This document shows, in pieces, positions 10,077-57,541 of a DNA stretch of 64,000 bases (positions within the stretch are counted from its first letter, which is position 1; each line of letters opens with the position of its first letter). The DNA lies in the IMG/VR virus record IMGVR_UViG_3300044568_003163, positions 124,001 through 188,000 of that record. One strand, given 5' to 3'. The position numbers and the translations under genes are program-made. A model generated the notes under the pieces. The model saw only the letters and a program-made list of their open reading frames with translations, was not told the origin of the DNA and searched no databases.

Positions 10077-10083
10077 TGTTTGT

Positions 10084-10401: not shown

Positions 10402-10404
10402 TTT

Positions 10405-30507: not shown

Positions 30508-30845
30508 TCTGATAATTTTGTGTGGAGTTGTTCTATCTCCAAGTTAGTTAAATTTGATTTTTTACCGTTGATGTCTACCGTGCAGGCAACAACGTTATTG
30601 TCTAAATAGCCAATAGCTGAATCTACCCTATCAATACTTCGACTTAAGAGTCCGTCTGGTTCAAATTTCACACCCGTATAGAAACATCTCTTAGTGGTAA
30701 GTAGTTTCTTAACTGCTCTAAATGATAGGTTAAATTCGATTCCTCGTGAACCTGCAGATTGATGCAATTTGATGAGCTTATTTGCTATGTCTAGATCCGT
30801 AAGTATTTCCTTAGGTTCAGATTTTATTTTATCAGCTTTTGCCAT
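30489..30845 (-). CDS. HNH-like endonuclease
   Basis: CFYTG...SIDRVDSAIGYLDNNVVAC...N; start reassigned to MAKADK. Confidence 0.75.
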   Translation of the reverse strand: MAKADKIKSEPKEILTDLDIANKLIKLHQSAGSRGIEFNLSFRAVKKLLTTKRCFYTGVKFEPDGLLSRSIDRVDSAIGYLDNNVVACTVDINGKKSNLTNLEIEQLHTKLSEWQKTH

Positions 30846-41128: not shown

Positions 41129-42685
41129 TTAGATGCTTTTAAATTTAGCATATTTCATTGCAGATCTTTTATTGAATATTTGATCGGTTATAGATTTTAT
41201 TCTTTCAGGATCTTCTACGATATTTCCAATTGAATCTTTTGCTTCAAATTCTAGTCCAGCTTGTTTACTATTAGTGGTAGCAGATCTTAATCTAATTTCA
41301 TATGCAATATCAGCAATAGTAACATAATAAAATATAACAAGGTCTAATCGACTAAACGAATCTAATATAACTACTTTAGCAGTATTATCGTTAGAACCAA
41401 TCATAGAAATAGTATCTCCACCATGAAAGAATTCATGAGTACCTTTACTTTTTATCTTGCCTGTGATTTTATGATATGGCGGATTTACGTTTTTATCTGA
41501 TTGTTTTAATCCAAATTTCAAAATACCTATTAGATTATTATCCAGATTAGATGTATCACCATTAGGTAAAGTAAATAAATGATAGACTAATTTTATAGCT
41601 GCGAGTTTATCTCCTAAATTTTGTTCTTTAATGTTATCTACACTTCCAGGATTGTAATGTATTTCCATGTATGAACCTGAATTAAGACCTCCTATCAATT
41701 GCTGATATTTTAATATTTCTGATTTGACCCATGGAATATCTTTTTTATATCGAGATATTTCTTCTGGCGTTAGATTATATATTGCGTCTTTAGGTGATAA
41801 AGATTTTAAATATTCCTTTGCTCTTCCTAATCTAGCAGCTTCTTGCTTTAACGATATTGCAACGATTGAGCCTATCGGTTCAGCAGAAGAAGATCTAGGA
41901 CTAAATTCCGTGCTAAATAATAAATTTAACTCGCCTATAGTAGTAGCATTATTTACATAATTAATTATAGAAGATTTTGCACTTTGGTCTATTAAATATA
42001 CATCTCCAGGACACCAGTTATCAGCAGAACTTAAACTAGAAAGTTTTAAACTTTTGCTTCTAATCATATTAAAAATTTCGTTTCGATCTAATCTATATCC
42101 GCTAGATGCAAAATCGGTCATAACGTTAGCAGTAGATTTCCATTGTAAAATTTGGTCTCGGTTAGCTTTATCGAAATTAGATAACCACGTTTTTAGTTTG
42201 TTTGCAGTTTTAGGATATAAATCTCCAGATGGAATATTATCTACTAAAGAAACTGCTTCAGAAGGGTCCATCGAAAGAATATCTGCATCTTGATTATAAT
42301 AAAAGAAAGCTACCATACCTTCTTTAGTATCTGTATCAGTCGAAGTTTTAGAGTGACCAGTAAATAATCCAGTTTTTAATAAATGAGTTAGAGGAACTTT
42401 TACTCCTTTAACATCCATTAATGGTTCTTTACCTGAAACTTCTTTATCACTTTCTATATACGATTTAATGTAATCTAAATTAGATATGTCTGATACTAAA
42501 AACTTAGAAAATGAGTACAGATCTTTTTTATCATCATCGATCATAAGATAAATATTCGGATCTTCGAGAAATTCTAAAAATTTTGGTCTATATTTCGCCT
42601 TCCTTTTTGGTTCATTCCACGCAGTAGGCAACATAGCAGCTTCATTTAATGACAGAACAAAATCTTTGAATTTTAGCATTTTCAT
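41129..42685 (-). CDS. leader-bearing putative internal head protein with PD-(D/E)xK-like nuclease motif
   Basis: MLKFKDFVLSLNE leader; DNWCPGDVYL...ISLKQ. Confidence 0.65.
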   Translation of the reverse strand: MKMLKFKDFVLSLNEAAMLPTAWNEPKRKAKYRPKFLEFLEDPNIYLMIDDDKKDLYSFSKFLVSDISNLDYIKSYIESDKEVSGKEPLMDVKGVKVPLTHLLKTGLFTGHSKTSTDTDTKEGMVAFFYYNQDADILSMDPSEAVSLVDNIPSGDLYPKTANKLKTWLSNFDKANRDQILQWKSTANVMTDFASSGYRLDRNEIFNMIRSKSLKLSSLSSADNWCPGDVYLIDQSAKSSIINYVNNATTIGELNLLFSTEFSPRSSSAEPIGSIVAISLKQEAARLGRAKEYLKSLSPKDAIYNLTPEEISRYKKDIPWVKSEILKYQQLIGGLNSGSYMEIHYNPGSVDNIKEQNLGDKLAAIKLVYHLFTLPNGDTSNLDNNLIGILKFGLKQSDKNVNPPYHKITGKIKSKGTHEFFHGGDTISMIGSNDNTAKVVILDSFSRLDLVIFYYVTIADIAYEIRLRSATTNSKQAGLEFEAKDSIGNIVEDPERIKSITDQIFNKRSAMKYAKFKSI

Positions 42686-42686
42686 A

Positions 42687-43610
42687 TTAGTTAAATAGTG
42701 TTGGATATAATTGTTCTACTTCAGTTGGCGCTGGCATTTTAGCCGATACAATATAAATTTTAAATCTATTTAGAATAGCATCTAAACGATCTTTGTGTAT
42801 AAATGTTGGTGATGTTGCTAATGCGAATGCATTTTCAAAAGTCATAATTTCGGCAGGTTTAACACCTTCACCAAAAGCAAATTTAACAACTTCTTCTGGT
42901 GTACTCGTAATGAATTTGTCTTGGTCATGTAAAAGAGTGGCAGTTTTAACTAATGAACCCTTTTTGCCCATGAAAGTTTTTTCTACTTGATAGATTCCTT
43001 TCTCTAAACGAATAACATATTGTTTGTATTGTTCGGTTTCTCCGGTTTCCGTTTTCTTAGTAGTTTCTTTCATACATTCAGAAACTATCGACATTAGGAG
43101 TACATTTCGGTACATTCCTTTGTATTTCGATTCTGCAATTTTAAAGTTTGGCGAGTAATACATAAAACGAGACCAATCTAAATTAGTAGAAAGCATAAAA
43201 TCTACTTGTGCAGTTCCACTATTTTTCTTACCTCCTACCGGAACTCCGATAGATATTTGTTCAAATCCTTTTGCAGTTCTAGTTGAATATCCTTCTTTCT
43301 TAAATGTATCTTCTAAAAATTGTAGTGCATCTTCCATCGATATTCCATTAACTCCAGCAATTTTATCTACTGAAACTGCAATATCTATGTCACCACTAGT
43401 AATTTCATCGGCTTTCTTACCATATGAACCAATTGGTGATGCATCAATTCCTTTACCTTCTAATCCGATTAGAGGAAATAAAGTCTTTTCAACCCACTCA
43501 TAAGTAGCAAGTACTTCAGGTTGAGTTAGAGGACGAGAATCCTCAATAGCATTTCCACTTTCGTTCAAAAACGTAGAAACAAAATCTTTAAATTTTAGCA
43601 TATTTCTCAT
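42687..43610 (-). CDS. leader-bearing Pol-beta-superfamily nucleotidyltransferase
   Basis: MLKFKDFVSTFLNE; IGSYGKK...SGDIDIAV...QVDFM. Confidence 0.75.
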   Translation of the reverse strand: MRNMLKFKDFVSTFLNESGNAIEDSRPLTQPEVLATYEWVEKTLFPLIGLEGKGIDASPIGSYGKKADEITSGDIDIAVSVDKIAGVNGISMEDALQFLEDTFKKEGYSTRTAKGFEQISIGVPVGGKKNSGTAQVDFMLSTNLDWSRFMYYSPNFKIAESKYKGMYRNVLLMSIVSECMKETTKKTETGETEQYKQYVIRLEKGIYQVEKTFMGKKGSLVKTATLLHDQDKFITSTPEEVVKFAFGEGVKPAEIMTFENAFALATSPTFIHKDRLDAILNRFKIYIVSAKMPAPTEVEQLYPTLFN

Positions 43611-43612
43611 AT

Positions 43613-43837
43613 TTATTCTTCTTCACATTCATATGCAGGACCAATTCCTTTGATAGGCACCTTTAATTTTTTACCTGTTTTATCGTCAACCACAATTATA
43701 TAATCGCCTTTAACTTCAGCAACTTTTCCTGTATGATTTACGTGAGTTCCAGGAACTATGTATTCGATGATGTTTCCTGGTCGAACATGGGAATATGCTT
43801 CGGCAATAAATTCCTCGTAAGTAGGTAATTTTTTCAT
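43613..43837 (-). CDS. leader-bearing small SH3/KOW-like protein
   Basis: MKKLPTYEEFIAE, nearly the T4 CTS. Confidence 0.7.
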   Translation of the reverse strand: MKKLPTYEEFIAEAYSHVRPGNIIEYIVPGTHVNHTGKVAEVKGDYIIVVDDKTGKKLKVPIKGIGPAYECEEE

Positions 43838-43852
43838 TCTAACTTTCATTTT

Positions 43853-44521
43853 TTATTGAATACCTTTAACCGAATAAGAGGTTATTAATTTTCTGTTATT
43901 TGCTGGTCTAGCCTTAAATGCTCTTAATGGGTAATAGTCATAATCGTGAGATTTTAACATTTTCAATAAATCATCTTTAGTAGCTTCTGACATATCAACA
44001 ATTGTATGTTTCTTACCTAATCTTCGGTTAGTATCATTTCCAATCAACTCAACTTCATCACCCTTTTCAAAAGAATCCTTAGTACCTAATAGTAAATAAC
44101 TTCCACTAGTTAAAAATGCATATAGTCCTTTATTTTCAAAAATAGACCAACCAAACATCGTAGCACCGGTAGTCATATTAATAACACCTACACTAAGTAC
44201 CATTGCTCTTAAAGAACGTCCTTCATTAAGTGAAGACTCACATAAGCTTTCATCAATTTTAGTTACGTTAGCATTTAAGTAATTCAAATCTACGTCGATA
44301 GCTAAACTAACATTTTTCTTTTTAGCCAAATCATTATCTGGCTTAATAGTAATTTCATCTGCAGATCTTCTTCGGTTAAAGAGGCCACTCATTCCTCTAG
44401 GTTTAACTACTTTCCAAGCTTCACCATCTTTGAAATGGATAATTGCATCTACTGGAAAATCTGTTATTTTAAACGAATTAGCTTCATTTAAGAAGTTTTC
44501 GAATGTAGGTATGTTTTTCAT
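43853..44521 (-). CDS. leader-bearing two-module protein
   Basis: MKNIPTFENFLNE; internal ESLCESSLNE. Confidence 0.75.
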   Translation of the reverse strand: MKNIPTFENFLNEANSFKITDFPVDAIIHFKDGEAWKVVKPRGMSGLFNRRRSADEITIKPDNDLAKKKNVSLAIDVDLNYLNANVTKIDESLCESSLNEGRSLRAMVLSVGVINMTTGATMFGWSIFENKGLYAFLTSGSYLLLGTKDSFEKGDEVELIGNDTNRRLGKKHTIVDMSEATKDDLLKMLKSHDYDYYPLRAFKARPANNRKLITSYSVKGIQ

Positions 44522-44536
44522 ATTATGTTATATGTT

Positions 44537-44956
44537 TTAATTTTTTATTGATTCTATTGTTAGTGTACAATCATCCATTAGACTGCCTAAAGCCGTTTGT
44601 ATTGCTGATTGAGATTCATCTGACGTAAACGTAACTAATTTTGTATAGTTTTCATGATGAGCATCAATTAAAAAATGATTCTTTAGCACTTTGAGAACTT
44701 CTGATGCAATTGAAGGTGTATCACAATCAATTTCGTAAGATTTATCTCTAGCTTCATTCATTGGCTTATTGATTTTACCTTTCTTTTCATGAAGAAGTCT
44801 TAATCTTTCTCTAAGGATTGCTTCTTGCTTTTCTCGGTTATCTTCCGGCAAACCTTTGATTTGCTTTTTAATTTCCTTAATTTTAGCTTGAATGTTGTCC
44901 ATTAAAGACTCAGCAGATTCACTAATAAATTCTTCAAATGTAGGTAAGTTCTTCAT
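44537..44956 (-). CDS. leader-bearing protein
   Basis: MKNLPTFEEFISE. Confidence 0.75.
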   Translation of the reverse strand: MKNLPTFEEFISESAESLMDNIQAKIKEIKKQIKGLPEDNREKQEAILRERLRLLHEKKGKINKPMNEARDKSYEIDCDTPSIASEVLKVLKNHFLIDAHHENYTKLVTFTSDESQSAIQTALGSLMDDCTLTIESIKN

Positions 44957-44964
44957 AGGTTAAT

Positions 44965-44995
44965 TTGCTATACAAATATAAACAATTTTCTCGAA
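44965..44995 (-). promoter_or_regulatory. host-type promoter (TATATTTG) without upstream box
   Basis: TATATTTG at 44973-44980. Confidence 0.5.
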
Positions 44996-45015
44996 AGAAA
45001 AAAATTTATTTGAAA

Positions 45016-46428
45016 TTATTTTTTGTGATTTTCTTTCCAAATTCCTTGCAACCAATCGTGCAATTCTTTGTTATTGTCTTTCTTACCAATGCCGTATTCT
45101 TTAATAAATTCAGCTTTAAATTCATCAAAAGTAGCAGCCTCTTCAGCCATAATATGAACATCACCCATAGCAGATTCTGCAATAAAAGTAGAAGATTCTT
45201 TGATATTAGTTTCCCAATAATCATGAAGTTTTTCAAATTCTTTACGACCCATATTAGCAATCATGTACTCTACGATATCGTTATCGTAGTCTTCCGCTTC
45301 ATCTCTATAACCACCTGGAGTATCAATATATTTGCTACCCATGATTCTTTTGATTCTAACTTCTGGCATTCCATCAATTTCTTCTAAGAATTCTTCAAAG
45401 TCTTTAGTTGCTTTGAATTTTTCAGCTTCATTAACGTAAGACTCTTTCATTAATGCTAAAGCACCTAATTCACTTAATGTAACTTTTGCGCCTTTATCTT
45501 TACCATTAACAGAAGAATGATATAACAATCCAGCATTAAACAATCTTTTTAAAACTTCACCTTTAACTAAATCAAAGCTAATTGTATCGCTTACATTATC
45601 CCATGAATCTACTACATATTCCGGTTCAATCCAACCATAACCTCTTTTAATGTTTTTAATCAAAGTTTCTACGTCTTTGTCGAATTGCTTAGCGGCAGCT
45701 TCATTAACTGAAGATTCAAATACTTGAGTATCATCCTTATTCCATTCACCTCTTTTAACAAATCCATGAACTGTAAAATTTGCTTGAGATATTCCGGTAG
45801 CTTTTACCAATTTGTTAATAGCATCGACTTCTACTTTTGCGTTGCTAATTCCTTTGATATACTTAAATTTGTATGTCTCTTTATTTTTAAAATCTAGAAC
45901 TTTAAAACCGTCGTAAAATTTAGTCATATCTCCTTCATTAATAACAGATTCATTAAGATAACCGTTATGTCTAAGATATTTTATCAAATCATTTTTATCT
46001 CTAGAAGGTATTTTATCAGCGTTGATTGTATATCCATCTTTTGATTTTACTACATCAATATCTGATTTTACATAAAGATTTTGACTGATCCATTTAATTA
46101 AACGTGTATGGTCAATGTCTGAAATATTCTTAAGATTAATATTTTCTTCATTAACAGATTTAACTTTACCTGAAAGAATTTTCTTAGCTTTGTCTAAGTC
46201 TCTTTGATTTTTGAAGATTAAGTTACCATCATCAGATACTTGAGGAAATGCATAATGTTGGTAAGGAATTCCTTTAAACAAAACATTCAAATAAGCAGTT
46301 GTTAAATTCATGTTAGCTGGCAAATCGTCATAATTAATGCGATATTTCGTATCCCATAGCTTTGCTTTCGGATCATTTAAAATGTCTTCATTTACGAAGT
46401 CTTCGTAAGTTGGTATATGATTTTTCAT
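45016..46428 (-). CDS. leader-bearing putative polyprotein (about six modules)
   Basis: MKNHIPTYEDFVNE; five internal SVNE/SVINE/SSVNE/SYVNE/FIAE linkers. Confidence 0.75.
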   Translation of the reverse strand: MKNHIPTYEDFVNEDILNDPKAKLWDTKYRINYDDLPANMNLTTAYLNVLFKGIPYQHYAFPQVSDDGNLIFKNQRDLDKAKKILSGKVKSVNEENINLKNISDIDHTRLIKWISQNLYVKSDIDVVKSKDGYTINADKIPSRDKNDLIKYLRHNGYLNESVINEGDMTKFYDGFKVLDFKNKETYKFKYIKGISNAKVEVDAINKLVKATGISQANFTVHGFVKRGEWNKDDTQVFESSVNEAAAKQFDKDVETLIKNIKRGYGWIEPEYVVDSWDNVSDTISFDLVKGEVLKRLFNAGLLYHSSVNGKDKGAKVTLSELGALALMKESYVNEAEKFKATKDFEEFLEEIDGMPEVRIKRIMGSKYIDTPGGYRDEAEDYDNDIVEYMIANMGRKEFEKLHDYWETNIKESSTFIAESAMGDVHIMAEEAATFDEFKAEFIKEYGIGKKDNNKELHDWLQGIWKENHKK

Positions 46429-47442
46429 TTATGATTGGTTTAATTTTTTTCTTAATTCTTTATAAAATGGATGAACCGATTTAGGAGTTAAAATCTTAAA
46501 TGCAGTTTCATCGTCAGCTAAAATAGCTTCTCTAACTTTAGTTCCTGAAGGACCACCTTCTTGTCTGCTATCAACCATTGCAACCGAAAATTCATCAACA
46601 GGTACATCAGATTTTTCAGATGTTAAATAGGCAACTTGTCTTTCATAATCTTTTTGTCTATCAGATCCACAACCTACACCAATCGGATTAAATCCCTTTT
46701 CTTGAATAAATTTTACCATTTGAGGTATTACTGTCTTATTACCAAGAGGGTACATCGCAAATTCTTGAATAAAATCAAATTCACCAGCTACTCGATGACC
46801 TATTTTTGATAATAGAAGAACATCAAATGGAGATTTTTCGGTCTTTGAAAATATTTGTAATGGGATAACAGGACAACCAAATGCCTGTGAAGTTCTTCTT
46901 AGAGCTTCAATATGTCCATTATGAAATGGTTGAAATCTACCAGGAAATATACATACTCGTTTGCCATCGATAGTAGCTTCGAATACTTCGTTTTCGTTTA
47001 ATTTATCAATAAAGCTTCTAAACATTGGTTTTACTTTATCGGCTAATTTACTAAATAGTCCAGGATTTTCTTCTGGAACTACATCCGGAGAAGCATTTCT
47101 AATAGTACTATCTACCATATAATCGTTAACAAAAACTTTAGCATCTTCTTCAGTTTCTATTTTACGTTGAACCATACTGAAATCTCCAGTGTCTTGTAAC
47201 ATCTCACGTGAAGTAGTAGGAGATACTGCAAAATGATTACCGAGTTTTTTATTCATATCACCAAAAGCAACATCTACTGTCTTTCCAACAATAGTACCTA
47301 TTAAGTCTTTTACTGTATTTTGTACCTTTTCATCTTTAATAATTTGCAAAGCAAAATATTTGATAGCTGGTGACATAGATTCACAGATGATCTGTTCATT
47401 TGATTCGTTAACGAAATCTTCAAAATGAGGTATGTTTTTCAT
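46429..47442 (-). CDS. leader-bearing HxGH nucleotidyltransferase (cytidylyltransferase/NMNAT-like)
   Basis: MKNIPHFEDFVNE; FPGRFQPFHNGH, GSDR, SGTKVRE. Confidence 0.8.
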   Translation of the reverse strand: MKNIPHFEDFVNESNEQIICESMSPAIKYFALQIIKDEKVQNTVKDLIGTIVGKTVDVAFGDMNKKLGNHFAVSPTTSREMLQDTGDFSMVQRKIETEEDAKVFVNDYMVDSTIRNASPDVVPEENPGLFSKLADKVKPMFRSFIDKLNENEVFEATIDGKRVCIFPGRFQPFHNGHIEALRRTSQAFGCPVIPLQIFSKTEKSPFDVLLLSKIGHRVAGEFDFIQEFAMYPLGNKTVIPQMVKFIQEKGFNPIGVGCGSDRQKDYERQVAYLTSEKSDVPVDEFSVAMVDSRQEGGPSGTKVREAILADDETAFKILTPKSVHPFYKELRKKLNQS

Positions 47443-47721
47443 TTATTCTTCTAGTTTTAATTGTTTGATCGGTTTAACGAAAGATGAATCTACATTTGTA
47501 AAAATTTCACCATAATAATCATCTAAAATATCATAAAATACTTTAGCTTTAGAAAAACTAACTTTTACAATAGTTCCAAAACGATAATCTCGAGTAATTT
47601 TTCGATCATCTGCTTGTTTAGCCGATGGCACAAAATCCACTTTATCATCTATTGAATAGGCTGATGGAAATTCAGTAGCACCTTCGTACAAGAAATTATC
47701 AAATGTAGGTATGTTTTTCAT
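47443..47721 (-). CDS. leader-bearing small SH3-like protein
   Basis: start reassigned to MKNIPTFDNFLYE. Confidence 0.75.
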   Translation of the reverse strand: MKNIPTFDNFLYEGATEFPSAYSIDDKVDFVPSAKQADDRKITRDYRFGTIVKVSFSKAKVFYDILDDYYGEIFTNVDSSFVKPIKQLKLEE

Positions 47722-47722
47722 A

Positions 47723-48910
47723 TTATTTACGGCATTCACCTTCTTTAATTGCAAATTCTTGAGCAATAGATTTAATCGCTCTATCGTCAGTATTTGATAT
47801 CGAAGTATGGAAGAATTTACTACCATCTTCATTTTTAAATAAACCTTTTACTGATTTACCCATCCAAGTTTTCCAAGGAAGAGATTCACCATAAGCTTTA
47901 ATAGCTTTGTCTCCGGTTTTGATTGTTACTTTGTTATTATTACTTGCCGCTGCTACATATTTTTTAGCATCTGCATAATTCTCATCCATATAAGCATTAA
48001 AATACTTTACGAATTTTTTTGCGTTTTCATTATCTTCAGCTGAAGAGATGAATTTTTGTTCAATGATTGTGTAGAATATAATGTCAACTACATTGGTAAT
48101 TGATTGAACTTCTATTCTAATTCCTAAATCAGGAGATAAACTTTCGTTTATGAATTTCTTAAATGTAGGAACTTTGCTTTCATTATATGGAAACCTAACA
48201 TCGATTTTACCACCAGAAAGAGATTTAGCAACTTTATTAACTTGATTTGGTTCAATCTTAGGCATTTCTGGTCTTGGTGGAGCACCAGCTGGAGGACCAA
48301 ATTTTTGTATCAATTTAAGACCAAGTTGAACCTTTGATTTATTAGCTTCATACCAAGCAACCGCCTTTTCTTTATTATAGAATTGAGGTTCCATGTTTTG
48401 ACCATCATATATACAATTCTCAATATCTTTAATTGTTGCATTGAATATATTGACATCTCCACCAGAAGGAATTCCACCTCTTTCGTTACCTAAAGCATCA
48501 CCGGCTTGTCTTAAAACTGGAACTAAGTCACCAATAGATAATTCAGCTTTAGCACCAATTACTTTAGCATTTGGATCGTTAAACATAGTAGCTGCCCATC
48601 GATGATGACCATCTAATATTCTATTATCTGAAGATATTATTGCATCTAACTTACCTCCTTTAACCCCAGCAATTGCTAGTCCTAATGCTTTACCTAAATA
48701 AACAGCATCTTGTGACGGTTTAAGTGATTTAGCAGGAATACCAGCATCTTTTGTAATTACGATATCATCGGTTGGATTTCCATCTCTTTTACCGTCAGTA
48801 AAAAAATCTGGATCGTTTTTATCGCCTGGATTAGGAAATTTTACCGGATTTATTTCTTTCGTACTTAATTCTTCATTTAAGAATTGCTCGAACGTAGGTA
48901 TGTTTTTCAT
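47723..48910 (-). CDS. leader-bearing ParB/Srx-like protein fused to a second leader-bearing module
   Basis: LKPSQ...ILDGHHRWAA; internal KVPTFKKFINE. Confidence 0.75.
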   Translation of the reverse strand: MKNIPTFEQFLNEELSTKEINPVKFPNPGDKNDPDFFTDGKRDGNPTDDIVITKDAGIPAKSLKPSQDAVYLGKALGLAIAGVKGGKLDAIISSDNRILDGHHRWAATMFNDPNAKVIGAKAELSIGDLVPVLRQAGDALGNERGGIPSGGDVNIFNATIKDIENCIYDGQNMEPQFYNKEKAVAWYEANKSKVQLGLKLIQKFGPPAGAPPRPEMPKIEPNQVNKVAKSLSGGKIDVRFPYNESKVPTFKKFINESLSPDLGIRIEVQSITNVVDIIFYTIIEQKFISSAEDNENAKKFVKYFNAYMDENYADAKKYVAAASNNNKVTIKTGDKAIKAYGESLPWKTWMGKSVKGLFKNEDGSKFFHTSISNTDDRAIKSIAQEFAIKEGECRK

Positions 48911-48926
48911 ATAATATGTATCTCGT

Positions 48927-49799: not shown

Positions 49800-49811
49800 A
49801 ATTTTTGTATT

Positions 49812-50159
49812 TTAATATTCAAATGGTGGAGTTTCGTAATCTGATTTCTTAACAGCAAACCAATTTCTATCTATTTTAAAATACCACCAACCTCGAGAAG
49901 AATCTATTACATAATGATTTCCTTTAAGTTTATATCCTTTATAACCGCCTCGTGTAAAGAATTTAGTTATAGGAGTTTGGTCTGGCCAAGTTTTATTGGT
50001 TGATTGAGCTTGTATGGATCTACCATCGAAAGTTGCAAGAAAAATATCTACGACACTTCCTTCAGATCTTTCTTCTCCGGCAAATTCTTTAATACCAGGT
50101 AGCATCGCTTCAACTGCTTCGTTGATAAATTCATCAAAAGTAGGTATGTGATTTTCCAT
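49812..50159 (-). CDS. leader-bearing protein
   Basis: MENHIPTFDEFINE. Confidence 0.75.
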   Translation of the reverse strand: MENHIPTFDEFINEAVEAMLPGIKEFAGEERSEGSVVDIFLATFDGRSIQAQSTNKTWPDQTPITKFFTRGGYKGYKLKGNHYVIDSSRGWWYFKIDRNWFAVKKSDYETPPFEY

Positions 50160-50617
50160 TATCTAGGTAATTGAGTTTTGTTCATTACTACCATTGTAGC
50201 ATATTTTGCATTAGTATGTTGTAAAACCCATGTAACTGGTCCTATTGACTCAAAATATTTTTTAAATGATGGATCGTTTTGTATTTTTGCATAGTCAGCG
50301 CTTGATTGTCTTGCTGCATTAACATTACAAAAAATAGCTCCTCTGTATTTAAAAGGTCCTTCCTCTGTATTTAATTCTCGGATTTCAAATCCCATATCGG
50401 AAGGATCGAAATCATCGTAACCTAAGTCAAATAAAACTTTAACTAGAGCCTGTCTTGTTTTTTCAGCTTCTTTAGCGATATTTGCAACCCAATTCCAATT
50501 AGAAATTTCTTGCTTAACGTCTGCTACGAAATTTTTATCAGCAGGAGTATTGAAAGATTTCCAAGCTCCGCTATCAGCTTCATTTATAAATGAGCTAAAA
50601 GATTGTAAGTTTTTCAT
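50159..50617 (-). CDS. leader-bearing protein
   Basis: MKNLQSFSSFINE. Confidence 0.75.
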   Translation of the reverse strand: MKNLQSFSSFINEADSGAWKSFNTPADKNFVADVKQEISNWNWVANIAKEAEKTRQALVKVLFDLGYDDFDPSDMGFEIRELNTEEGPFKYRGAIFCNVNAARQSSADYAKIQNDPSFKKYFESIGPVTWVLQHTNAKYATMVVMNKTQLPR

Positions 50618-50636
50618 ATTTTTATTTAGATGATCG

Positions 50637-51098
50637 TTATTTTATTAGTAAGTTTTTGAAAAAATCTCGTTCGTCTGCCTTTACTGCATATAAGTAAAAA
50701 CTTCTATCATTTCCATTAACATATCTTATTGATTTGATAGATTTCATTTCTAAAACTCCTAATTGAACTGGATTTAAAGGGAATGTTATATCAGTTATAC
50801 CATCACACGTTAATTCAATATTCGATCTAATTGTCATATATTTGCCATCGACAAAAGTAAATATTAATGCATCTCTTTTACTGCATTTTCCAATATTTAA
50901 TTTTATTGTGATTAAATAATTTTTTTCAGATATTCCATTATATTTTTTAAAATGAGGTATAATGGTAAACCATTTACTTCTGTCTTCAGTAGAACAGATC
51001 AACATAGAATTTTCTTCCTTTTTAGTTGTAGGCTGTTCGTTTTGTGAATTACCAACAAATGTTAGTAATAAAAATAGTAAGATGCATAATTTTTTCAT
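50637..51098 (-). CDS. secreted hypothetical protein (no leader)
   Basis: Sec signal peptide MKKLCILLFLLLTFVGNS-Q. Confidence 0.7.
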   Translation of the reverse strand: MKKLCILLFLLLTFVGNSQNEQPTTKKEENSMLICSTEDRSKWFTIIPHFKKYNGISEKNYLITIKLNIGKCSKRDALIFTFVDGKYMTIRSNIELTCDGITDITFPLNPVQLGVLEMKSIKSIRYVNGNDRSFYLYAVKADERDFFKNLLIK

Positions 51099-51112
51099 TA
51101 GATTTATATTTT

Positions 51113-52378
51113 TTATGAATAAGCTTCGATGTCATATTGAATTCTTTCTAAAGGAGTTTCGTCGTTGCAAAGATTTTTCTTAACCCAATCAAGTAAACCT
51201 GGTTCAAATTTAGCATTTTGTGCCATATCATAAGCATTTTCTGCACCACCATTACCGGACATATCTTTAACCCATTTGTCATATATCTTTTTATTCCATG
51301 AATGTGCTTTTTGTTTCTGTGCATGAGGTCCATTACCTAAAGTAGAGAAAACCGCCATAGATGAATTAGGAATAAATACGTCTAATAAACCTTCAGTGCC
51401 TGATTTACCATTGTCATATTTAATTTCTCTTCTAAATTTTGCCAATGCATAATCTGCAGATGCTATTTGAGATGAACTTGACATTGCTCCAGTTTTCTTA
51501 CCGTAAGCTTTTTTAAGTTGCAGTTGTTTATCTGGATCGATTTCAAAGTGAATATCTCTGATATAATCATCAAACCAACCTTCATTTAAAAAAGATTCCA
51601 TAATACATTCATAAACATCACCTTTGAAGTTTTGGAGACCTCTTTCTTTACTATAATATAAAGTCAATGGTTGGTTACTACGATTTAGTAAATCAATTTC
51701 TTTGATATTACTCGAACCTCCTAATATTTTCTTTATCGTATAGGTTCCTACATCTCCAGTTCTACTATTTTTTAATTCTATAGTATCTTTTACTTTCATT
51801 TTAGATACGTCAAAATCTTCATTCACACCTTCCATAAGATTACCACCTCCATCAATTCCAGCACTATGCCAATATTCACCTTTACCATTATAAGTTTTAG
51901 TAAATGCTACATACTCTTTTGTTTTAGGATTCCAAAAGTGACTTTCACCATTAGAGGCTGTCATCATTTTTAAAATACCACTTTTAGCATCTTTTATCAG
52001 TTTTAATTGAACTGCTCTAGTTAAAGGCTCTCTAACTTTTAGTTTAGAAGGACTAGCTGCTGATAATGCTTCATCGATTTGCAAAGATTCTAGCATTTCA
52101 GGAGTTTCATTAAAATTTAAACTATTTCCTGATGCAACCGAAATTCCAGCAGCACCTCTAAGAGAAACTCGTAAATTGAATTTATCTCCTTTTTCGTTTT
52201 CTGCTGCTAAATCTCGAGTAGCATTAGTTTTTTGACCATAAGCTATAATAGTATAAGTTTCGGCTTTAGTTTTAATTACTGATCCAATTCTTAATTTATT
52301 AGCATCTTTAGGACTTAAATATCCTTCATTAATGATTGACTCATTAACAAAATCTTCAAATGTAGGTATGTTTTTCAT
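51113..52378 (-). CDS. leader-bearing putative polyprotein (about four modules)
   Basis: MKNIPTFEDFVNESIINE; internal ESLQIDE, EGVNE, ESFLNE. Confidence 0.75.
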   Translation of the reverse strand: MKNIPTFEDFVNESIINEGYLSPKDANKLRIGSVIKTKAETYTIIAYGQKTNATRDLAAENEKGDKFNLRVSLRGAAGISVASGNSLNFNETPEMLESLQIDEALSAASPSKLKVREPLTRAVQLKLIKDAKSGILKMMTASNGESHFWNPKTKEYVAFTKTYNGKGEYWHSAGIDGGGNLMEGVNEDFDVSKMKVKDTIELKNSRTGDVGTYTIKKILGGSSNIKEIDLLNRSNQPLTLYYSKERGLQNFKGDVYECIMESFLNEGWFDDYIRDIHFEIDPDKQLQLKKAYGKKTGAMSSSSQIASADYALAKFRREIKYDNGKSGTEGLLDVFIPNSSMAVFSTLGNGPHAQKQKAHSWNKKIYDKWVKDMSGNGGAENAYDMAQNAKFEPGLLDWVKKNLCNDETPLERIQYDIEAYS

Positions 52379-52390
52379 GGTTATATAATT

Positions 52391-53200
52391 TTAGTATCTT
52401 CCGTATCCTACTGAGCTTTCAAATGAACCTACAAAGTAATTAGTTCCATCAACATCGATCGTTACAGATGAAGATAATTCGGTAATGTCTACTTGAGTAA
52501 ATCCAATAGAATTAGAAATTGTTTTATTATCAACTCTAGAAACATCTTTATTGATTTCGATTTTAGAATCAGGAGTTAATTTGATTTTGTTTTTTCTAAG
52601 ACCAGCAATTATCATTTTATAAACTCTTTCAAAATCTGATCCTGAATATGCAGAATAGTTACATTCTTTGTTTACTGCAACTGCTAAGTTTAATCTAGCA
52701 GCAGGTGTTCCGGTTGACCAAGATTTTAAAACTTCAATCAAATTAGTTAGTGCATCTTTCATTGCTGGCAAATCTTTATTTTCAACAGTAAACGAAGGCT
52801 CGATTAATTTAACCGCTTCAGTAATAGGTCCTTGAGACCTTCCTCCTGGCGAAGCATCAGTATATATGAATGCCAAAAATTCAATAATTGGTGCAGTTGC
52901 TTTACCTGATCTTAAATAATCAGCAGCAGACTTAGCAACTTCTTTGAATTGAGCACCTGGAGATTTAGTAAAATAGCTAGGTCTTAATCCAGCAGATGGC
53001 CAACCTGCATCATAATGAAATAAAGTAAATAGTGGTTCGTGATCGATTCCATCTTTATAACCTTTAGCCGATCTAAATCGTAAAGTTTTTTGTAATGCAT
53101 GAGAAGTAGCAAAATCTAATCCATTTTCTTGTAGAGCTTCGTTGATAGAAGTTAATTTTGATTCATTAACGAAATTCTCAAATGTAGGTATATTTTTCAT
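52391..53200 (-). CDS. leader-bearing protein
   Basis: MKNIPTFENFVNE. Confidence 0.75.
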   Translation of the reverse strand: MKNIPTFENFVNESKLTSINEALQENGLDFATSHALQKTLRFRSAKGYKDGIDHEPLFTLFHYDAGWPSAGLRPSYFTKSPGAQFKEVAKSAADYLRSGKATAPIIEFLAFIYTDASPGGRSQGPITEAVKLIEPSFTVENKDLPAMKDALTNLIEVLKSWSTGTPAARLNLAVAVNKECNYSAYSGSDFERVYKMIIAGLRKNKIKLTPDSKIEINKDVSRVDNKTISNSIGFTQVDITELSSSVTIDVDGTNYFVGSFESSVGYGRY

Positions 53201-53208
53201 TTATGTGA

Positions 53209-53514
53209 TTACTTTTTATTAATAGTTACGCTAAAGGTATATTCTTGATTGCCAGGAACTTGTATATAAATGTCATATTTTTTAGCATTATCCCAAAGAG
53301 ATAATGACGTACCAAAAGATTGATGCATGTAAAATACTACACTATCACCTTTATCCCAGATTTGACTGATAGCATATCTAGGAGAAGTATACATCTGATC
53401 CTCTAATATTTTTTTAAAGTGAGGATAAGATTTACACAACTCTTCGTATTGTTTGAAATTCTCAGTTGTAGATGATTCGTTTACGAATCCGTCAAAGGTA
53501 GGTATGTTTTTCAT
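53209..53514 (-). CDS. leader-bearing protein
   Basis: MKNIPTFDGFVNE. Confidence 0.75.
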   Translation of the reverse strand: MKNIPTFDGFVNESSTTENFKQYEELCKSYPHFKKILEDQMYTSPRYAISQIWDKGDSVVFYMHQSFGTSLSLWDNAKKYDIYIQVPGNQEYTFSVTINKK

Positions 53515-53616
53515 TATAGTTCTTTAGATAATCTACTAATAATTTCTTGGTTATTAGCGATACGTTTTTGATTTTTAAGTTGGTTACCTCTATTAGGTTT
53601 TTGTTTGCCTTCTTTT

Positions 53617-53895
53617 TTAGATTTCGACATTATGTTTGATTATTTTGATTCGAACATCAGATGTTCCTTGTATAATTCTATGTATCTCACCGCATTTGAT
53701 GAATATTTCTTGATTAAGAGAAATAGGCAATTGGTTATCGAATTGAAACTGCCAATCCGTAGAATCCATTGCTTGAATGGTTCTATCTTGTTCATCCCAA
53801 TGCCATTTGAATTCTTCAGGATGAGTATCAGCACTAAATGTTCTTATAAAAACATTATCTCCTAAATCTTCTTCTATAAAGGGCAATTCTACCAT
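53617..53895 (-). CDS. cupin-like small protein
   Basis: WHWDEQDR...WQFQFDNQLP...HRII. Confidence 0.65.
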   Translation of the reverse strand: MVELPFIEEDLGDNVFIRTFSADTHPEEFKWHWDEQDRTIQAMDSTDWQFQFDNQLPISLNQEIFIKCGEIHRIIQGTSDVRIKIIKHNVEI

Positions 53896-54434
53896 GGATT
53901 GTCAGATGAAAGTCCTAATTGTTTAGTAAAAAGTGAAGGAGCATAGCAAGCCCAAAATCCTTTTTTAGAAGGATCCATTTTCTTTTGTAAATCACATTGT
54001 TGTCTAGCCCAAAAAGATGAAGCAGCTCCTTCATCGGCATTATTAATTGCACGATTTGGATCTCCCCATTCTATTTTAGTAGCAATGATATTTCCATCAT
54101 CATCTTTCTTACCACTGTTGTGATAAACTTGATATTTTTGTTCTCCGCCTCTTTGTGGTGTGTCTAATTTAACATCTATCCATGAATCATTGTCAGTTTT
54201 GAATTTAGCCTTTTTACCTACTTCTAGGTTCTTTGCCATCCAAGCTGATTTTCCATTTAAGATGATATTTCCTTTGTCCCAATATTGTTTTGCCTCTTCA
54301 AATAAATCATCATAAGCTTGTGAACCTAAACGAAATACTGAAGTAGATAAATCTAGTCCATTTGCTTGGTGATATTTGAAAGCTTCTGAAGAGTTTTCGC
54401 GAATGAAATCTTCAAATTCTGGTATGTTTTTCAT
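53889..54434 (-). CDS. leader-bearing protein
   Basis: MKNIPEFEDFIRE; WGDP...FWARQQC...FWAC. Confidence 0.75.
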   Translation of the reverse strand: MKNIPEFEDFIRENSSEAFKYHQANGLDLSTSVFRLGSQAYDDLFEEAKQYWDKGNIILNGKSAWMAKNLEVGKKAKFKTDNDSWIDVKLDTPQRGGEQKYQVYHNSGKKDDDGNIIATKIEWGDPNRAINNADEGAASSFWARQQCDLQKKMDPSKKGFWACYAPSLFTKQLGLSSDNPW

Positions 54435-54444
54435 ATAATTTTAT

Positions 54445-54490
54445 TTTTATAGTACAAATATAAACATAATTTCCGATACTAGGAAATTAT
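54445..54490 (-). promoter_or_regulatory. host-type promoter (TATATTTG) with hairpin
   Basis: TATATTTG at 54455-54462; ATAATTTCC/GGAAATTAT. Confidence 0.5.
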
Positions 54491-54602
54491 TTTAAACCCT
54501 TTTTAATTTCGTCGTATATCATGAGCATAAAAAGTAGGCCCATTATTCCAGCAAAGAAAGGTAGGCAATTAGGTTCAGAATTCACTGCATTAAACGATTA
54601 TT

Positions 54603-55544
54603 TTAGTATATGTCACCGGTTCTTAACATAGAAGATATGTCTGTAAAATATGCCATTTCTTCTGGAGTTAATTTAGATTTAATATATTTTCCAATTGTTG
54701 CTAATTCTCGAGCTCTGGCACTATATGCATTGGCCTTATATGGTGGCAAATCTTGATACATTTGTGCAAGTCTCGTATCACCATCAAATTTCTTAACGAT
54801 TTCAGCAATTAGTTCTTTTCTTTTACCTTTTGCTGCCATCTTAGCTTTTGACTCAGCTTTATTAGCAATTGCTTCTGCTGCATCTCCAAGAACATTACCT
54901 ACAACAGGTAAACCTTTAGCTAACGCCCATAAACCAGCTATTCCAACTGCTACGCCTATTGCAACATCGGCAATTAGACCAGCATCTTCGTTAATTACTG
55001 ATTCTCTGATCGAAATTTGCAAATGTTTCTTTATTGCAACTTTCATTTTAGTAATACTATTAATATTTTTATTCAACGGAGATTGTTGTCTTCCATCTTT
55101 GTATAATTCTATATAAGTATCACCCTCAGCACCACTAACTACTCTAATAGTACATAATGGATATTTTACGTTATTATAATCATCGTGGTATAATCTTCCT
55201 CTGCCGATAGGAGTTACATATGATTTAGATTCTTTACGAATCCAACCATTTTGTGTTAATACATCACCAAAGTCATGGCTATTATTTTCGTTTATTGATT
55301 CTCGAATTTCAAATCCATCAGCTTCGATTGCTTTTTTAGCTTTACGTAATTCGATAGCGTTAAGTGCCTTAACTACCATTTGTTCTGAATCATGTATTGC
55401 TGGTTCTGCAATTGCATCAACTCCAGCATCCATCAGAACATTTTGAATGTATTCTACGTCATCGTCGTCAGTATTATATTGAATCGAAAATGTATATTCT
55501 TTTGCTTCGTTGATGAAATCTTCAAATGTAGGTATGTTTTTCAT
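54603..55544 (-). CDS. leader-bearing putative polyprotein (three modules, last with a TM helix)
   Basis: MKNIPTFEDFINE; internal IRESINE and IRESVINE. Confidence 0.75.
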   Translation of the reverse strand: MKNIPTFEDFINEAKEYTFSIQYNTDDDDVEYIQNVLMDAGVDAIAEPAIHDSEQMVVKALNAIELRKAKKAIEADGFEIRESINENNSHDFGDVLTQNGWIRKESKSYVTPIGRGRLYHDDYNNVKYPLCTIRVVSGAEGDTYIELYKDGRQQSPLNKNINSITKMKVAIKKHLQISIRESVINEDAGLIADVAIGVAVGIAGLWALAKGLPVVGNVLGDAAEAIANKAESKAKMAAKGKRKELIAEIVKKFDGDTRLAQMYQDLPPYKANAYSARARELATIGKYIKSKLTPEEMAYFTDISSMLRTGDIY

Positions 55545-55550
55545 TTATGT

Positions 55551-55838
55551 TTATATTTTGATTTTTTTAACTTCGTAACCAGTATAAGAATCTTTGTCTT
55601 CTGGGTTGTGGAACCTATAAAAGGTCTTAAATTCATAATCATGTCTAGCTGGATTAAACCACTCATCATCATATTCATATTCATGGCTTTCTGCCCATTT
55701 CTCAGCTTCGATCTTAGAATTCCAATATTCTAATGTATAAGGAACATCATCTCCATGATCGCCATAAAAGATAACTTGCCATTTTTCATTTTTAACCGCT
55801 TCGTTAATAAACTCTTCTAATGTAGGTAGTTTGTGCAT
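55551..55838 (-). CDS. leader-bearing protein
   Basis: MHKLPTLEEFINE. Confidence 0.75.
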   Translation of the reverse strand: MHKLPTLEEFINEAVKNEKWQVIFYGDHGDDVPYTLEYWNSKIEAEKWAESHEYEYDDEWFNPARHDYEFKTFYRFHNPEDKDSYTGYEVKKIKI

Positions 55839-56218
55839 TATTTACTTTTTGGTATATTTCTATTGAAAATTATTGAAGATTCATTATCGTTAACTCTAAC
55901 TATTCTAAAATATATTCGATTCGTTTTGTCTTGATACAATGTTCGATTTAAACTTCCTACTGTACCTGCTATAGGAAATAGATTTTCTACCTTTTGAATA
56001 AATAATTGTTCATCTTTTAAATTCTTAAAATAAACATTAATATACAATTCAGATTTAGAACCAGATGCAAATCTAGAAACATTACTATCAAATCTCACAC
56101 CAGATACTAAAGTCTTCATACTATTTATTGAAGATTCTATATCTGCTTTAAGAGATTCCTTGTTGACCGGAGTTCCGCTTTCGTTTAAGAACTCTTCAAA
56201 AGTAGGTATGTGATTCAT
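55838..56218 (-). CDS. leader-bearing protein
   Basis: MNHIPTFEEFLNE. Confidence 0.75.
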   Translation of the reverse strand: MNHIPTFEEFLNESGTPVNKESLKADIESSINSMKTLVSGVRFDSNVSRFASGSKSELYINVYFKNLKDEQLFIQKVENLFPIAGTVGSLNRTLYQDKTNRIYFRIVRVNDNESSIIFNRNIPKSK

Positions 56219-56223
56219 TGTGA

Positions 56224-57513
56224 TTATTTTTTATATGCGATCATCGAACGGATTTGGTGCAATGGTGCAAAAATTCCAGTATACTTGTAAAGCTTACCTT
56301 TAAATAAGAAAGTAATTCCTTCGGTAGGCACTATTGATTCTAAACCACCAGCAGCAGCAACTCTACTCAATTCATGTTCTAATTTTTCAATGTCTTTCTC
56401 ATCGCCATTAACTCTAATTTTAGCAATAGAATCCTCTATTTCTTTTTTCATAGTCATGGCAGCTTCAGTTGGATTTGCGGATAAAAATGATGTGATATTT
56501 TTCATCATTTCCGTTCCTATTTCTAAGAAGATATTTTCAAGAGGAGCGTAAACTTCTCTCTTCCAAGCTTTTGCTTTTTTCTTTTCTAAATCAATAAACC
56601 AATTTGCGTTATCACCTAAGTCTTTTTTGATTTGTCCTACTGAGTAAGATTTATCAATATCTGCAAGTCTTCTAGCTAATCCATCAAGTGAATTTTCCGG
56701 CAAAGTAATTCCAGCATCATTAGCTTCTCTTGTGATAATGTTCTTACCCATACCTAAAGCATAATCACCAACAGTAGATGTTTGATTACAATTAGAATCC
56801 GACATTATTTGTGATAGTTTATCAGCATAGTATTTAGCTCTCGCTTTAGTATTTGGTAGCGGTTGATATGCAATATCTTGAGGACCTCTAACGAAGAAAG
56901 TTTCTTGTGCTGCTGCATTAGCGTCAGCTATTAACTTACCTAATTCTCTAGCTGCTTGTTTGTCTTCATCGATTACATTTGCAGCTTCATCATACTCAAC
57001 AACTCCATGAAACACTAACATATTTTGTCCATAAGGCACAGTATTTTGTGTAACTGGTGTGATTATTTCTACTGATGCAAATTTTTGTCCTTCGTTAAAA
57101 AATCTCTTTTTATCTTTATCTGATAGAGAACCTATCGAAGCAGTAAGATCAGCCATAGCTGCATTAAATGCAATTTCTATATCACCTCTACCGGCAAAAA
57201 GTTCTGCAGTTGTAGCAGAATTTAAAGCATTTTCACCAAAGTTTTTAAGGTGAGTTTTATTTCTCGCTGAAATCAATTGACCATTCTTCCAAGAGATAGA
57301 AAGTTGTTGACCATCAGTTTTTTCTTGTACAAAGTTTTCTGGACCGAACGCTCCATTAACGGTAGTTTGTAGCATTTCTTCTAAATCCAAAAAGGTCAAC
57401 CCGATATCCTCGAAAGGATGTGCGAGATGACCATAGGCACCACCCTCATTGAGAGGTACGTTAATGGATTCGTTCAATTTCTTAACGAAATCGTTAAATT
57501 TAAGTAGTTTCAT
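56224..57513 (-). CDS. leader-bearing ATP-dependent ligase-fold protein (DUF6267-like)
   Basis: MKLLKFNDFVKKLNE; HLAHPFED, EKTDG (KxDG), EII, EGITF, YKYTG. Confidence 0.65.
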   Translation of the reverse strand: MKLLKFNDFVKKLNESINVPLNEGGAYGHLAHPFEDIGLTFLDLEEMLQTTVNGAFGPENFVQEKTDGQQLSISWKNGQLISARNKTHLKNFGENALNSATTAELFAGRGDIEIAFNAAMADLTASIGSLSDKDKKRFFNEGQKFASVEIITPVTQNTVPYGQNMLVFHGVVEYDEAANVIDEDKQAARELGKLIADANAAAQETFFVRGPQDIAYQPLPNTKARAKYYADKLSQIMSDSNCNQTSTVGDYALGMGKNIITREANDAGITLPENSLDGLARRLADIDKSYSVGQIKKDLGDNANWFIDLEKKKAKAWKREVYAPLENIFLEIGTEMMKNITSFLSANPTEAAMTMKKEIEDSIAKIRVNGDEKDIEKLEHELSRVAAAGGLESIVPTEGITFLFKGKLYKYTGIFAPLHQIRSMIAYKK

Positions 57514-57533: not shown

Positions 57534-57541
57534 TATTTATA
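57534..57541 (-). promoter_or_regulatory. possible T4-type late promoter TATAAATA at the head of the leader array
   Basis: exact octamer 20 nt upstream of the ATG, but common by chance in AT-rich DNA. Confidence 0.35.

Follow-up and report, generated by a model that had tools for sequence, protein, structure and literature searches.

The internal proteins of T-even phages are diverse, and their N-terminal capsid-targeting sequence (CTS) alone is conserved (PMC3012670, PMC9026906). In T4 the proteins IPII and IPIII begin with MKTYQEFIAE/A (a slash marks a cleavage position, known or predicted, throughout), and CTS mutants have assigned residues 4 and 7 to targeting and residues 8 and 10 to processing (PMC9026906). 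The T4 protease gp21 cuts the scaffold protein gp22 to pieces, likewise after Glu (PMC9026906). In phiKZ-like phages (SPN3US, phiKZ and 201phi2-1), dozens of head proteins, including enzymes, are processed after Glu, some of them at multiple sites (PMC5694885). Here we describe an array of genes at positions 41129-57513 of a 64,000-nucleotide stretch of viral DNA (hereafter the window; bases 124001-188000 of the 294,034-bp record IMGVR_UViG_3300044568_003163, which is JGI contig Ga0453733_0000002). The products of this array share a leader of about 13 residues which, as judged from sequence, is likely a T4-type propeptide that targets proteins to the prohead and is removed by the head protease. 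Dozens of proteins are thus probably packed into the head of this phage.

Proteins injected by a phage act before phage gene expression and are therefore prime candidates for counter-defence and host takeover. They are usually not recognisable from sequence, and in the present case a short, searchable tag appears to mark them.

A leader shared by the genes of the array

As given by the listing of open reading frames (ORFs) and the curated gene list, the array comprises 22 closely spaced genes on the minus strand, as are the window's other genes, and the leader stands at the N-terminus of 20 of them, with the consensus M-K-N-I-P-T-F-E-E-F-[LIV]-N-E. The type MKNIPTFExF[ILV]NE, or a near variant, begins 17 of the 20 leader genes, and the type MK(x)LKFxDFV..LNE begins the other three, namely the gene that opens the array (56224-57513) and the two that close it (42687-43610 and 41129-42685). 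Two array genes, 50637-51098 and 53617-53895, are leaderless. Matches of a strict leader pattern in the six frames of the window were confined to the array block. A looser N-terminal pattern, which took 18 of the 22 array genes (two starts of the form MxNHIPT were added to reach 20), was found in none of the 104 other minus-strand ORFs of at least 60 amino acids (aa) and none of the 14 plus-strand ORFs of the window. The clustering of leaders in the array is confirmed to lie far above chance.

Following the leader, the proteins differ throughout. With the first 16 residues removed, no cargo matched another in BLASTP at E<=0.01, and the isoelectric points (pI) of the cargos span 4.8-9.7 at sizes of up to 518 aa. 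In 20 of the 22 genes, proteins with no other relationship thus carry a short N-terminal leader whose length lies within the propeptide range of 10-19 residues. The initial annotation of this stretch had described a leader on 20 of about 22 consecutive genes, a complete divergence behind it and one leader reading PTYEEFIAE. All three observations were borne out, the last one by MKKLPTYEEFIAE in gene 43613-43837. Two entries of the ORF list were corrected: ORF 47443-47832 truly starts at 47721 (MKNIPTFDNFLYE), and the start of ORF 43613-43849 is probably 43837.

When leader and T4 CTS are aligned on the Glu, T4 positions 4, 7, 8 and 10 correspond to the F/Y, F, I/L/V and E of the leader. The second aromatic position is Phe, followed by Ile, Leu or Val and by Glu two residues on, in 20 of 20 window leaders; the first aromatic position holds Phe or Tyr in 19 of them and Leu in one. 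BLASTP aligned IPTFEDFINEA of gene 54603-55544 in the same register with MKTYQEFIAEA of T4 IPII (E 0.02, carried by the leader), and residues 6-84 of this protein matched PHROG 2667, 'internal head protein' (E 6e-4). The mature parts of the cargos gave no homology to T4 IPI-III, either in a tblastn search of the 313-aa cargo 54603-55544 against 50,697 phage records or in BLASTP, and a megablast search of the array against the same number of phage records gave no match.

The pattern of codon conservation points to the peptide as the target of selection. Among 15 leaders, the nine core codons have mean pairwise identities of 0.74, 0.85 and 0.48 at codon positions 1, 2 and 3, compared with 0.30, 0.31 and 0.32 in the nine codons after the core and 0.37 in the 30 nucleotides (nt) upstream of the leader genes. 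The residues are thus held while synonymous positions drift, which argues for selection on the peptide rather than on a DNA repeat or an RNA operator. According to a rival explanation, the conserved 5' end is itself a DNA or RNA element, such as the boundary of a recombination cassette, a translation-initiation signal or a regulatory operator, and the peptide is a by-product. Codons 1-4 (ATG AAA AAC ATA) are indeed conserved in DNA as well, being almost identical, a point that weighs against the propeptide; some added selection on translation initiation is possible on this ground. Furthermore, relatives contain chimeras broken at or near the leaders, so the leader repeats clearly act as recombination substrates and also promote recombination, and promoter and stem-loop elements have been proposed as cassette boundaries at the T-even internal-protein loci. 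The DNA-element explanation was nevertheless rejected on the codon-position statistics and is, in our view, very improbable: the third positions of the core vary freely where the first two are held, the DNA upstream of the leaders is without conservation, the peptide pattern is kept in distant phages with other codons and residues, and the motif persists within fused proteins, where a start site is needless.

Head genes and the predicted cleavage site

The contig that contains the window also encodes a large terminase (Terminase_6N), a tail sheath protein (Phage_sheath_1C) and a tail tube protein. Its head genes, located by degenerate DNA patterns derived from relatives, include a portal protein (Pfam Portal_T4, E 1e-72) and a Gp23 capsid protein (Pfam, E 7e-16) at loci L299 and L285. 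They also include a prohead protease of the gp21 type (L299:3-1422, minus strand), which matches Pfam Peptidase_S77 with E 1e-12 (48.3 bits vs a cutoff of 27) and scores higher as S77 (48 bits) than as S80 (30 bits). By its portal, protease, capsid, terminase and sheath genes the phage is assigned to the T4 superfamily, with a Straboviridae-like core. The gene order portal, protease-scaffold, capsid protein was the same in each of the related loci, about 28 in number, that extended far enough to reveal it, and the closest GenBank records are Tenacibaculum phages PTm1, PTm5 and pT24, phage PAU, the Lak megaphages and several huge uncultured phages.

In this clade the protease and a scaffold-like coiled coil form one fused ORF of about 637 aa (L299:3-1422, minus strand; orthologues at L295, L281 and L288). 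The sequence ..AELKRVNE/SFG stands directly after the protease domain in nine of nine orthologues. The fused scaffold contains 9-10 [ILVM]NE sites where 1.5 are expected (a six-fold enrichment, p<0.0005), and orthologues only 50-75% identical have them at the same positions. This enrichment, together with the analogy to T4 gp22, makes [ILVM]-N-E/ a likely site of the protease, and the leader ends in it. We infer from the same sequences and the same analogy that the scaffold would be degraded at [ILVM]NE.

In two families a conserved mature domain begins right after the predicted cleavage Glu (..LNE/GGAYGH and ..LNE/GGNA). The alignment of over 500 homologues of 56224-57513 (65-93% identity) becomes invariant at G24 (GGAYGH); E23 and F9 each show a conservation of at least 90%, and the leader is otherwise variable in sequence and length. 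Among the 359 homologues of 42687-43610, GGNA opens the mature domain straight after [ILV]NE. AlphaFold2 (AF2) models of both proteins place a low-confidence N-terminal helix and a linker before a confident globular body. For 56224-57513 (predicted local distance difference test, pLDDT, 77), the leader corresponds to a low-confidence helix at residues 6-17, followed by a disordered linker.

Leader genes also occur at the head genes themselves. Outside the window, on the same contig, six of them lie by portal and head-completion genes, one between scaffold and capsid and one after phoH, and six more were found about 7-10 kb to the left of the window on a near-identical contig. The count of leader genes amounts to 28 on the contig pieces read and to 34 with the flank of the near-identical strain. 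Among 80 loci around related proteases (the contigs returned by a search with a three-sequence protease alignment), 65 have at least one ORF start that fits a loose leader pattern, such starts including some internal scaffold Met residues and short chance ORFs. Many of them adjoin the protease: a small gene in the gp67/gp68 position, a downstream gene of 300-390 aa and, often, the capsid protein. In phage PAU (JQ362498, L346:6052-13736), about ten genes around portal, protease and scaffold start with MK[TS]L[TS]xL[YF]E..KLNE/[AS], two of which were labelled 'internal capsid protein' by the depositors, and the PAU capsid protein has ..AKLNE/SF near its N-terminus. A literature search found no paper describing the PAU leader family.

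The leader DNA pattern stands at ORF starts in some 20 contigs of IMG/VR, many of which measure 100-425 kb, and T4 core genes lie close by. Bacterial and archaeal genomes totalling 596 Gbp yielded only internal or chance matches to it, bar one mis-binned phage contig. The 425,361-bp sequence JBBACR010000001.1 (L306), labelled as a metagenome-assembled genome of Candidatus Pacearchaeota, has the same leader genes as the IMG/VR phage contig 3300035208_004923 and is evidently a jumbo phage binned into an archaeal genome.

These distributions also bear on the explanation that the leader is another sorting or stability signal, for instance for export by a phage transporter, for an intracellular compartment or for degradation, and has no relation to the capsid. 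An ABC-transporter-like membrane protein is encoded at window 18630-19472, and the tie of leader and head is known here from genes alone, both in favour of such a signal. The leader, however, possesses neither the hydrophobic core of a signal peptide nor a double-glycine motif, was not found in cellular genomes in the 596-Gbp scan and occurs on genes of the head cluster and on the capsid protein of relatives. Its final tripeptide is the one enriched in the scaffold, and the head genes make the phage T4-like. A cellular secretion signal was rejected on the scan of the genome collection, and we give the wider explanation scarcely any credence.

According to the propeptide reading, each leader gene would give rise to a pre-protein that begins with a short helix of about 13 residues. 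The aromatic and aliphatic face of this helix would bind the scaffold core during prohead assembly, by which the cargo would become enclosed in the shell. The serine protease of the gp21 family, fused to the scaffold, would then cut after the Glu of [ILV]-N-E and leave the mature cargo free inside the head; the same protease would shred the scaffold at the same motif, and the larger, fused cargos would probably be cut into separate modules at their ..EF[VIL]NE junctions. The T4-like capsid-targeting leader proposed in the initial annotation has gained support from the S77 protease, portal and gp23 on the contig, the scaffold enrichment in [ILVM]NE, the domain boundary after the Glu and the leader genes of the head cluster. 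By analogy with T4 IPI* and Alt, ejection of the cargos and an action on the host are, in our view, moderately probable.

Several points weigh against these conclusions. Scaffold binding, cleavage, presence in the virion, ejection and the roles of the cargos are all predicted, presence in the virion and cleavage from sequence and not from protein. The likeness to T4 internal proteins in PHROG and BLASTP is marginal and covers about 10 residues. The cargos are not small and basic like T4 internal proteins, and at least 30 species, some above 50 kDa, would be a large load for one head. In a logo of 105 leaders (distinct tagged ORFs from a few dozen loci), P2 is Asn in 83, P1' is Ser, Ala or Gly in 69 and P3 is Ile, Leu or Val in 103 of the 105, counts that are partly forced by the search pattern, which left only P2 and P1' free and restricted P3 to I/L/V/M. 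Finally, a leader family of this kind is missing from the whole genome of Tenacibaculum phage PTm1, which is the closest cultured relative with a good annotation, and the trait is hence not universal in the clade.

Cargos, cassette fusions and surrounding genes

The cargos contain 14 internal [ILVM]NE sites vs 4.0 ± 2.0 in shuffled sequences (maximum 10 in 1000 shuffles), often in the form ..ES-x-x-[ILV]NE/[AGSD]. As the separate genes of relatives show, these sites are due to cassette fusion. At the related locus L001 the halves of 47723-48910 are encoded separately (256 and 152 aa) and both begin with a leader, and the enzyme half of 46429-47442 stands alone with a leader joined straight to it (FVFE/ATLNGKRVC). 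At locus L016 the modules of 45016-46428 are separate small leader genes, where the start ..FINESIINEGDM.. matches the window-internal ..YLNESVINEGDM... The 400-aa members of the 42687-43610 family have a module of about 100 aa inserted between the leader and ..ESEEF[VIL]NE/GGNA, and a leader remnant is kept at the junction in 14 of 15 of these proteins. As read from these sequences, the large cargos are fusions of leader-cargo cassettes which keep a remnant of the tag at their junctions. Since no start codon is needed at these junctions, the motif kept there would act at the peptide level, and the simplest such role would be that of an internal cleavage site. The leader array of L001 also contains, at 9936-10499 on the minus strand, a GIY-YIG gene for a homing endonuclease like T4 Seg, which is absent from the window.

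Two of the array cargos were assigned by structure prediction. The AF2 model of 42687-43610 (pLDDT 89) matched Pol lambda/mu/beta and Cid1 in Foldseek (E 8e-6, probability 1.0), and the cargo looks like a Pol X or terminal-nucleotidyltransferase fold. For 56224-57513 the top Foldseek matches were all RNA ligases and weak (E 0.014), and K65-x-D67-G68 is invariant; the model thus weakly suggests an RNA-ligase-like cargo. Additionally, 46429-47442 matched Pfam CTP_transf_like (E 3e-5) and NCBIfam TIGR00125 (28.8 bits, over its cutoff). A homologue of 56224-57513 in the Microcystis phage Mel-JY01 (L345:5290-7209, 639 aa) is fused to a cytidylyltransferase-like domain with the junction ..IIAE/GG.., a fusion which hints that the cytidylyltransferase-like and ligase-like domains may act together.

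Almost nothing on the function of the other cargos was obtained from Pfam, PHROGs and NCBIfam, and, when six cargos were compared by sequence with PDB chains, only the HxGH transferase gave an informative result. A relatedness to ParB/Srx, suggested by the DGHHR motif of 47723-48910, received no support from Pfam. A match of 44537-44956 to Acb2_Tad1_hairpin (Pfam E 0.016, below the cutoff) was not corroborated in PDB and was rejected.

The initial annotation had further proposed an injected arsenal against host defence. No support was obtained for this part of the proposal: the family and structure searches made gave no match of any cargo to a known anti-defence protein, the two cargos searched, 42687-43610 and 56224-57513, belong to core genes of the clade that are not hypervariable (51-98% identity over hundreds of metagenomic homologues), and the recognisable folds are those of nucleic-acid enzymes. 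Such data also agree with an alternative in which the leader does target the prohead and most cargos are equipment for the head or for the phage's own DNA, such as core or inner-body components, DNA condensation and the repair of ends or nicks at entry. The conservation of the two families speaks for it, as does the resemblance of a nucleotidyltransferase of the Pol X type, an RNA-ligase-like protein and an HxGH nucleotidyltransferase to a repair kit. T4 IPII and IPIII, too, are without a known anti-defence role (PMC9026906). On the other hand, many small cargos differ between close relatives through gains, losses, fusions and chimeras (the window compared with L001, L004, L016 and L018), a turnover that fits conflict-driven evolution, and both roles are compatible. 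We regard the equipment explanation as a possible one, somewhat on the doubtful side.

Beyond the prohead-targeting propeptide itself, we tentatively propose an open, modular system of cargo loading, in which any protein bearing the 13-residue tag would be packed. Recombination at the tag would shuffle, fuse and split the cassettes, fused ones would be separated by the protease, and a clade of Bacteroidota jumbo phages would deliver at least 30 ready-made proteins in each infection, including a nucleic-acid kit for repair or modification (the Pol X-like, RNA-ligase-like and HxGH enzymes) and many small counter-defence proteins.

The features of the array are collected in Table 1. Orthologues of 53889-54434 in L001 (95%) and L018 (66%) are each always followed by a counterpart of the leaderless 53617-53895, whose product might remain unpackaged and serve the cargo as partner or inhibitor. 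The L001 counterpart of 52391-53200 has its leader joined to the C-terminal part of the next gene. Starts like that of 59461-59982 (LHES[FL].EF[LV]NE) were seen in the left-flank cluster L033, and the gene caller chose a longer ORF for 59461-59982.

Table 1. Genes of the leader array and candidate expression signals in the window (coordinates in window positions)
Feature	Position	Strand	Remarks
Array gene 1, 429 aa, RNA-ligase-like cargo (weak match)	56224..57513	-	variant leader MKLLKFNDFVKKLNES..PLNE/GGAYGH
Leader gene, 126 aa	55838..56218	-	leader MNHIPTFEEFLNE/S
Leader gene, 95 aa	55551..55838	-	leader MHKLPTLEEFINE/A
Leader gene, 313 aa	54603..55544	-	two internal [ILV]NE sites
Leader gene, 181 aa	53889..54434	-	leader MKNIPEFEDFIRE/N
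Leaderless acidic gene, 92 aa	53617..53895	-	7-nt overlap with end of cargo gene 53889-54434
Leader gene, 101 aa	53209..53514	-	
Leader gene, 269 aa	52391..53200	-	tandem site FVNES..SINE/A
Leader gene, 421 aa	51113..52378	-	three more [ILV]NE sites
Leaderless gene, 153 aa, interloper	50637..51098	-	N-terminus signal-peptide/lipoprotein-like
Leader gene, 152 aa	50159..50617	-	leader MKNLQSFSSFINE/A
Leader gene, 115 aa	49812..50159	-	leader MENHIPTFDEFINE/A
Leader gene, 290 aa	48927..49799	-	leader MINIPLFENFLNE/D
Leader gene, 395 aa, two fused cassettes	47723..48910	-	second leader KVPTFKKFINES inside at 48143-48169; DGHHR in first module
Leader gene, 92 aa	47443..47721	-	leader MKNIPTFDNFLYE/G
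Leader gene, 337 aa	46429..47442	-	leader, unknown module of ~150 aa, junction ..KLNENEVFE/AT, HxGH adenylyl/cytidylyltransferase-like domain
Leader gene, 470 aa, multi-cassette fusion	45016..46428	-	five internal [ILV]NE sites
Leader gene, 139 aa	44537..44956	-	leader MKNLPTFEEFISE/S
Leader gene, 222 aa	43853..44521	-	one internal site SSLNE/G
Leader gene, 74 aa, most T4-like leader	43613..43837	-	MKKLPTYEEFIAE/A
Leader gene, 307 aa, putative Pol X / terminal-nucleotidyltransferase-fold cargo	42687..43610	-	variant leader MRNMLKFKDFVSTFLNE/SGNA
Last array gene, 518 aa	41129..42685	-	variant leader MKMLKFKDFVLSLNE/A; PHROG 1462 (unknown function), E 1e-6
Possible extra leader gene beyond array	59461..59982	-	if internal Met is the start: MNNKLHESFDEFVNES; MNNKLHESFDEFVNE/S
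TATAAATA, T4 late-promoter consensus	57534..57541	-	21 nt upstream of first array gene
GTTTATATTTGTA, Bacteroidetes-type -7 promoter-like element	54453..54465	-	largest intergenic gap of array
Second exact copy of GTTTATATTTGTA	44971..44983	-	intergenic gap

The late-promoter motif TATAAATA is not enriched in the window (11 found vs 13.6 expected) and its position is therefore weak evidence for a late promoter. The element GTTTATATTTGTA, which we take to be a promoter on the consensus TAnnTTTG, belongs to a -7 type with 17 matches vs 9 expected in the window, those on the minus strand lying mostly just upstream of gene starts. Genes for internal proteins of T4 are expressed early as well as late. 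By consensus match alone, the copies of TATAAATA and GTTTATATTTGTA would fit early plus late expression of the array. Scans for sigma-70 promoters and terminators were uninformative in this AT-rich genome, whose host is probably a member of Bacteroidota.

The assignment of the host rests on a sorting domain of the type IX secretion system (T9SS), the Bacteroidetes-type promoter element and the hosts of relatives. The T9SS C-terminal sorting domain (Por_Secre_tail), a Bacteroidota secretion tag, is part of a 1006-aa protein with DUF4874 and DUF4832 at window 14863-17883 (minus strand). The host of phage PAU is in fact a Sphingobacterium (PMC3738902).

Other genes of the window include a gene like T4 Srd, a putative anti-sigma factor (30546-30788, minus strand; 34% identity over 85 aa), a DUF2828/DUF7788 protein (36566-38002, minus strand) and a Thg1-like tRNA-His guanylyltransferase (29359-30234, minus strand; Pfam Thg1, E 2e-28). 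Along with the ligase-like and nucleotidyltransferase cargos, the latter hints at RNA repair as a theme of the phage. The part of the contig that separates the window from the tail genes contains a 1924-aa ORF without a Pfam match (L248:4213-9987) and a sigma-70-like factor (L248:13525-14127). About 14 kb past the right end of the window, the contig encodes a 395-aa protein matching Pfam RuBisCO_large (L248:18131-19318, also L031:1-341), flanked by an NTP-transferase gene and a methyltransferase-like gene.

Comparison with known packaging systems

If the reading of the leader as a prohead-targeting propeptide is true, the tag would offer a direct way to list the injected proteome of a large group of uncultured Bacteroidota jumbo phages and could serve as a sequence handle for mining injected effectors in metagenomes. 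The fused cargos would be natural polyproteins of tagged cassettes resolved by a head protease. Furthermore, the leader would represent a second, naturally diversified version of the T4 packaging tag that is used in phage-based protein delivery.

Fusion of unrelated effector-type domains in one injected chain is described for the polyvalent proteins of phages and conjugative elements, in work cited in PMC7824862. The polyvalent proteins are very large single chains, whereas the fusions described here reach about 570 aa and have a probable cleavage site at each junction. Polyvalent proteins are not known to share an N-terminal tag or to have a protease motif where their domains join. The literature search likewise found no paper on an expanded leader array, cassette fusions or a fused protease-scaffold in phages of this kind.

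The phiKZ-like phages resemble the present one as jumbo phages with many head proteins and cleavage by a prohead protease after Glu, which is predicted in our case. They cut at [S/A/G]-x-E, have propeptides mostly longer than 100 residues without a common tag, use an S80-type protease and have no gp22-type scaffold. Here, in contrast, the tag is short (about 13 residues) and uniform, P3 is Ile, Leu or Val and the protease is of the S77 type, and the features that define the phiKZ system are not found. Phage PAU is closer, sharing the protease clade and about ten leader-type genes in the head module. It differs in the N-terminal half of the leader (LTxLYE vs IPTFExF here) and in the location of these genes in the head module, not in a separate 16-kb array.

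The likeness to the T4 CTS and internal proteins extends to an N-terminal propeptide of 10-19 residues on unrelated proteins, the spacing aromatic-x-x-Phe-[Ile/Leu/Val]-x-Glu followed by Ala or Ser, a genome that also encodes a T4 portal, a gp23 capsid protein and a protease of the gp21 family, and a scaffold rich in the cleavage motif. In contrast to the three such genes of T4, there are 20 in the array, and 28 on the contig pieces (34 with the flank of the strain). The consensus is longer here (MKNIPTFExF[ILV]NE), with Asn at P2. The cargos are non-basic and up to 518 aa long, with enzyme folds among them; leader remnants persist in the cassette fusions, a single gene encodes protease and scaffold, and the host is probably a Bacteroidota. 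Hence, what is new in this locus compared with the described systems is the scale, the 13-residue consensus with Asn at P2, the large, non-basic and apparently enzymatic cargos, the cassette fusions, the fused protease-scaffold and the phage group in which they occur.

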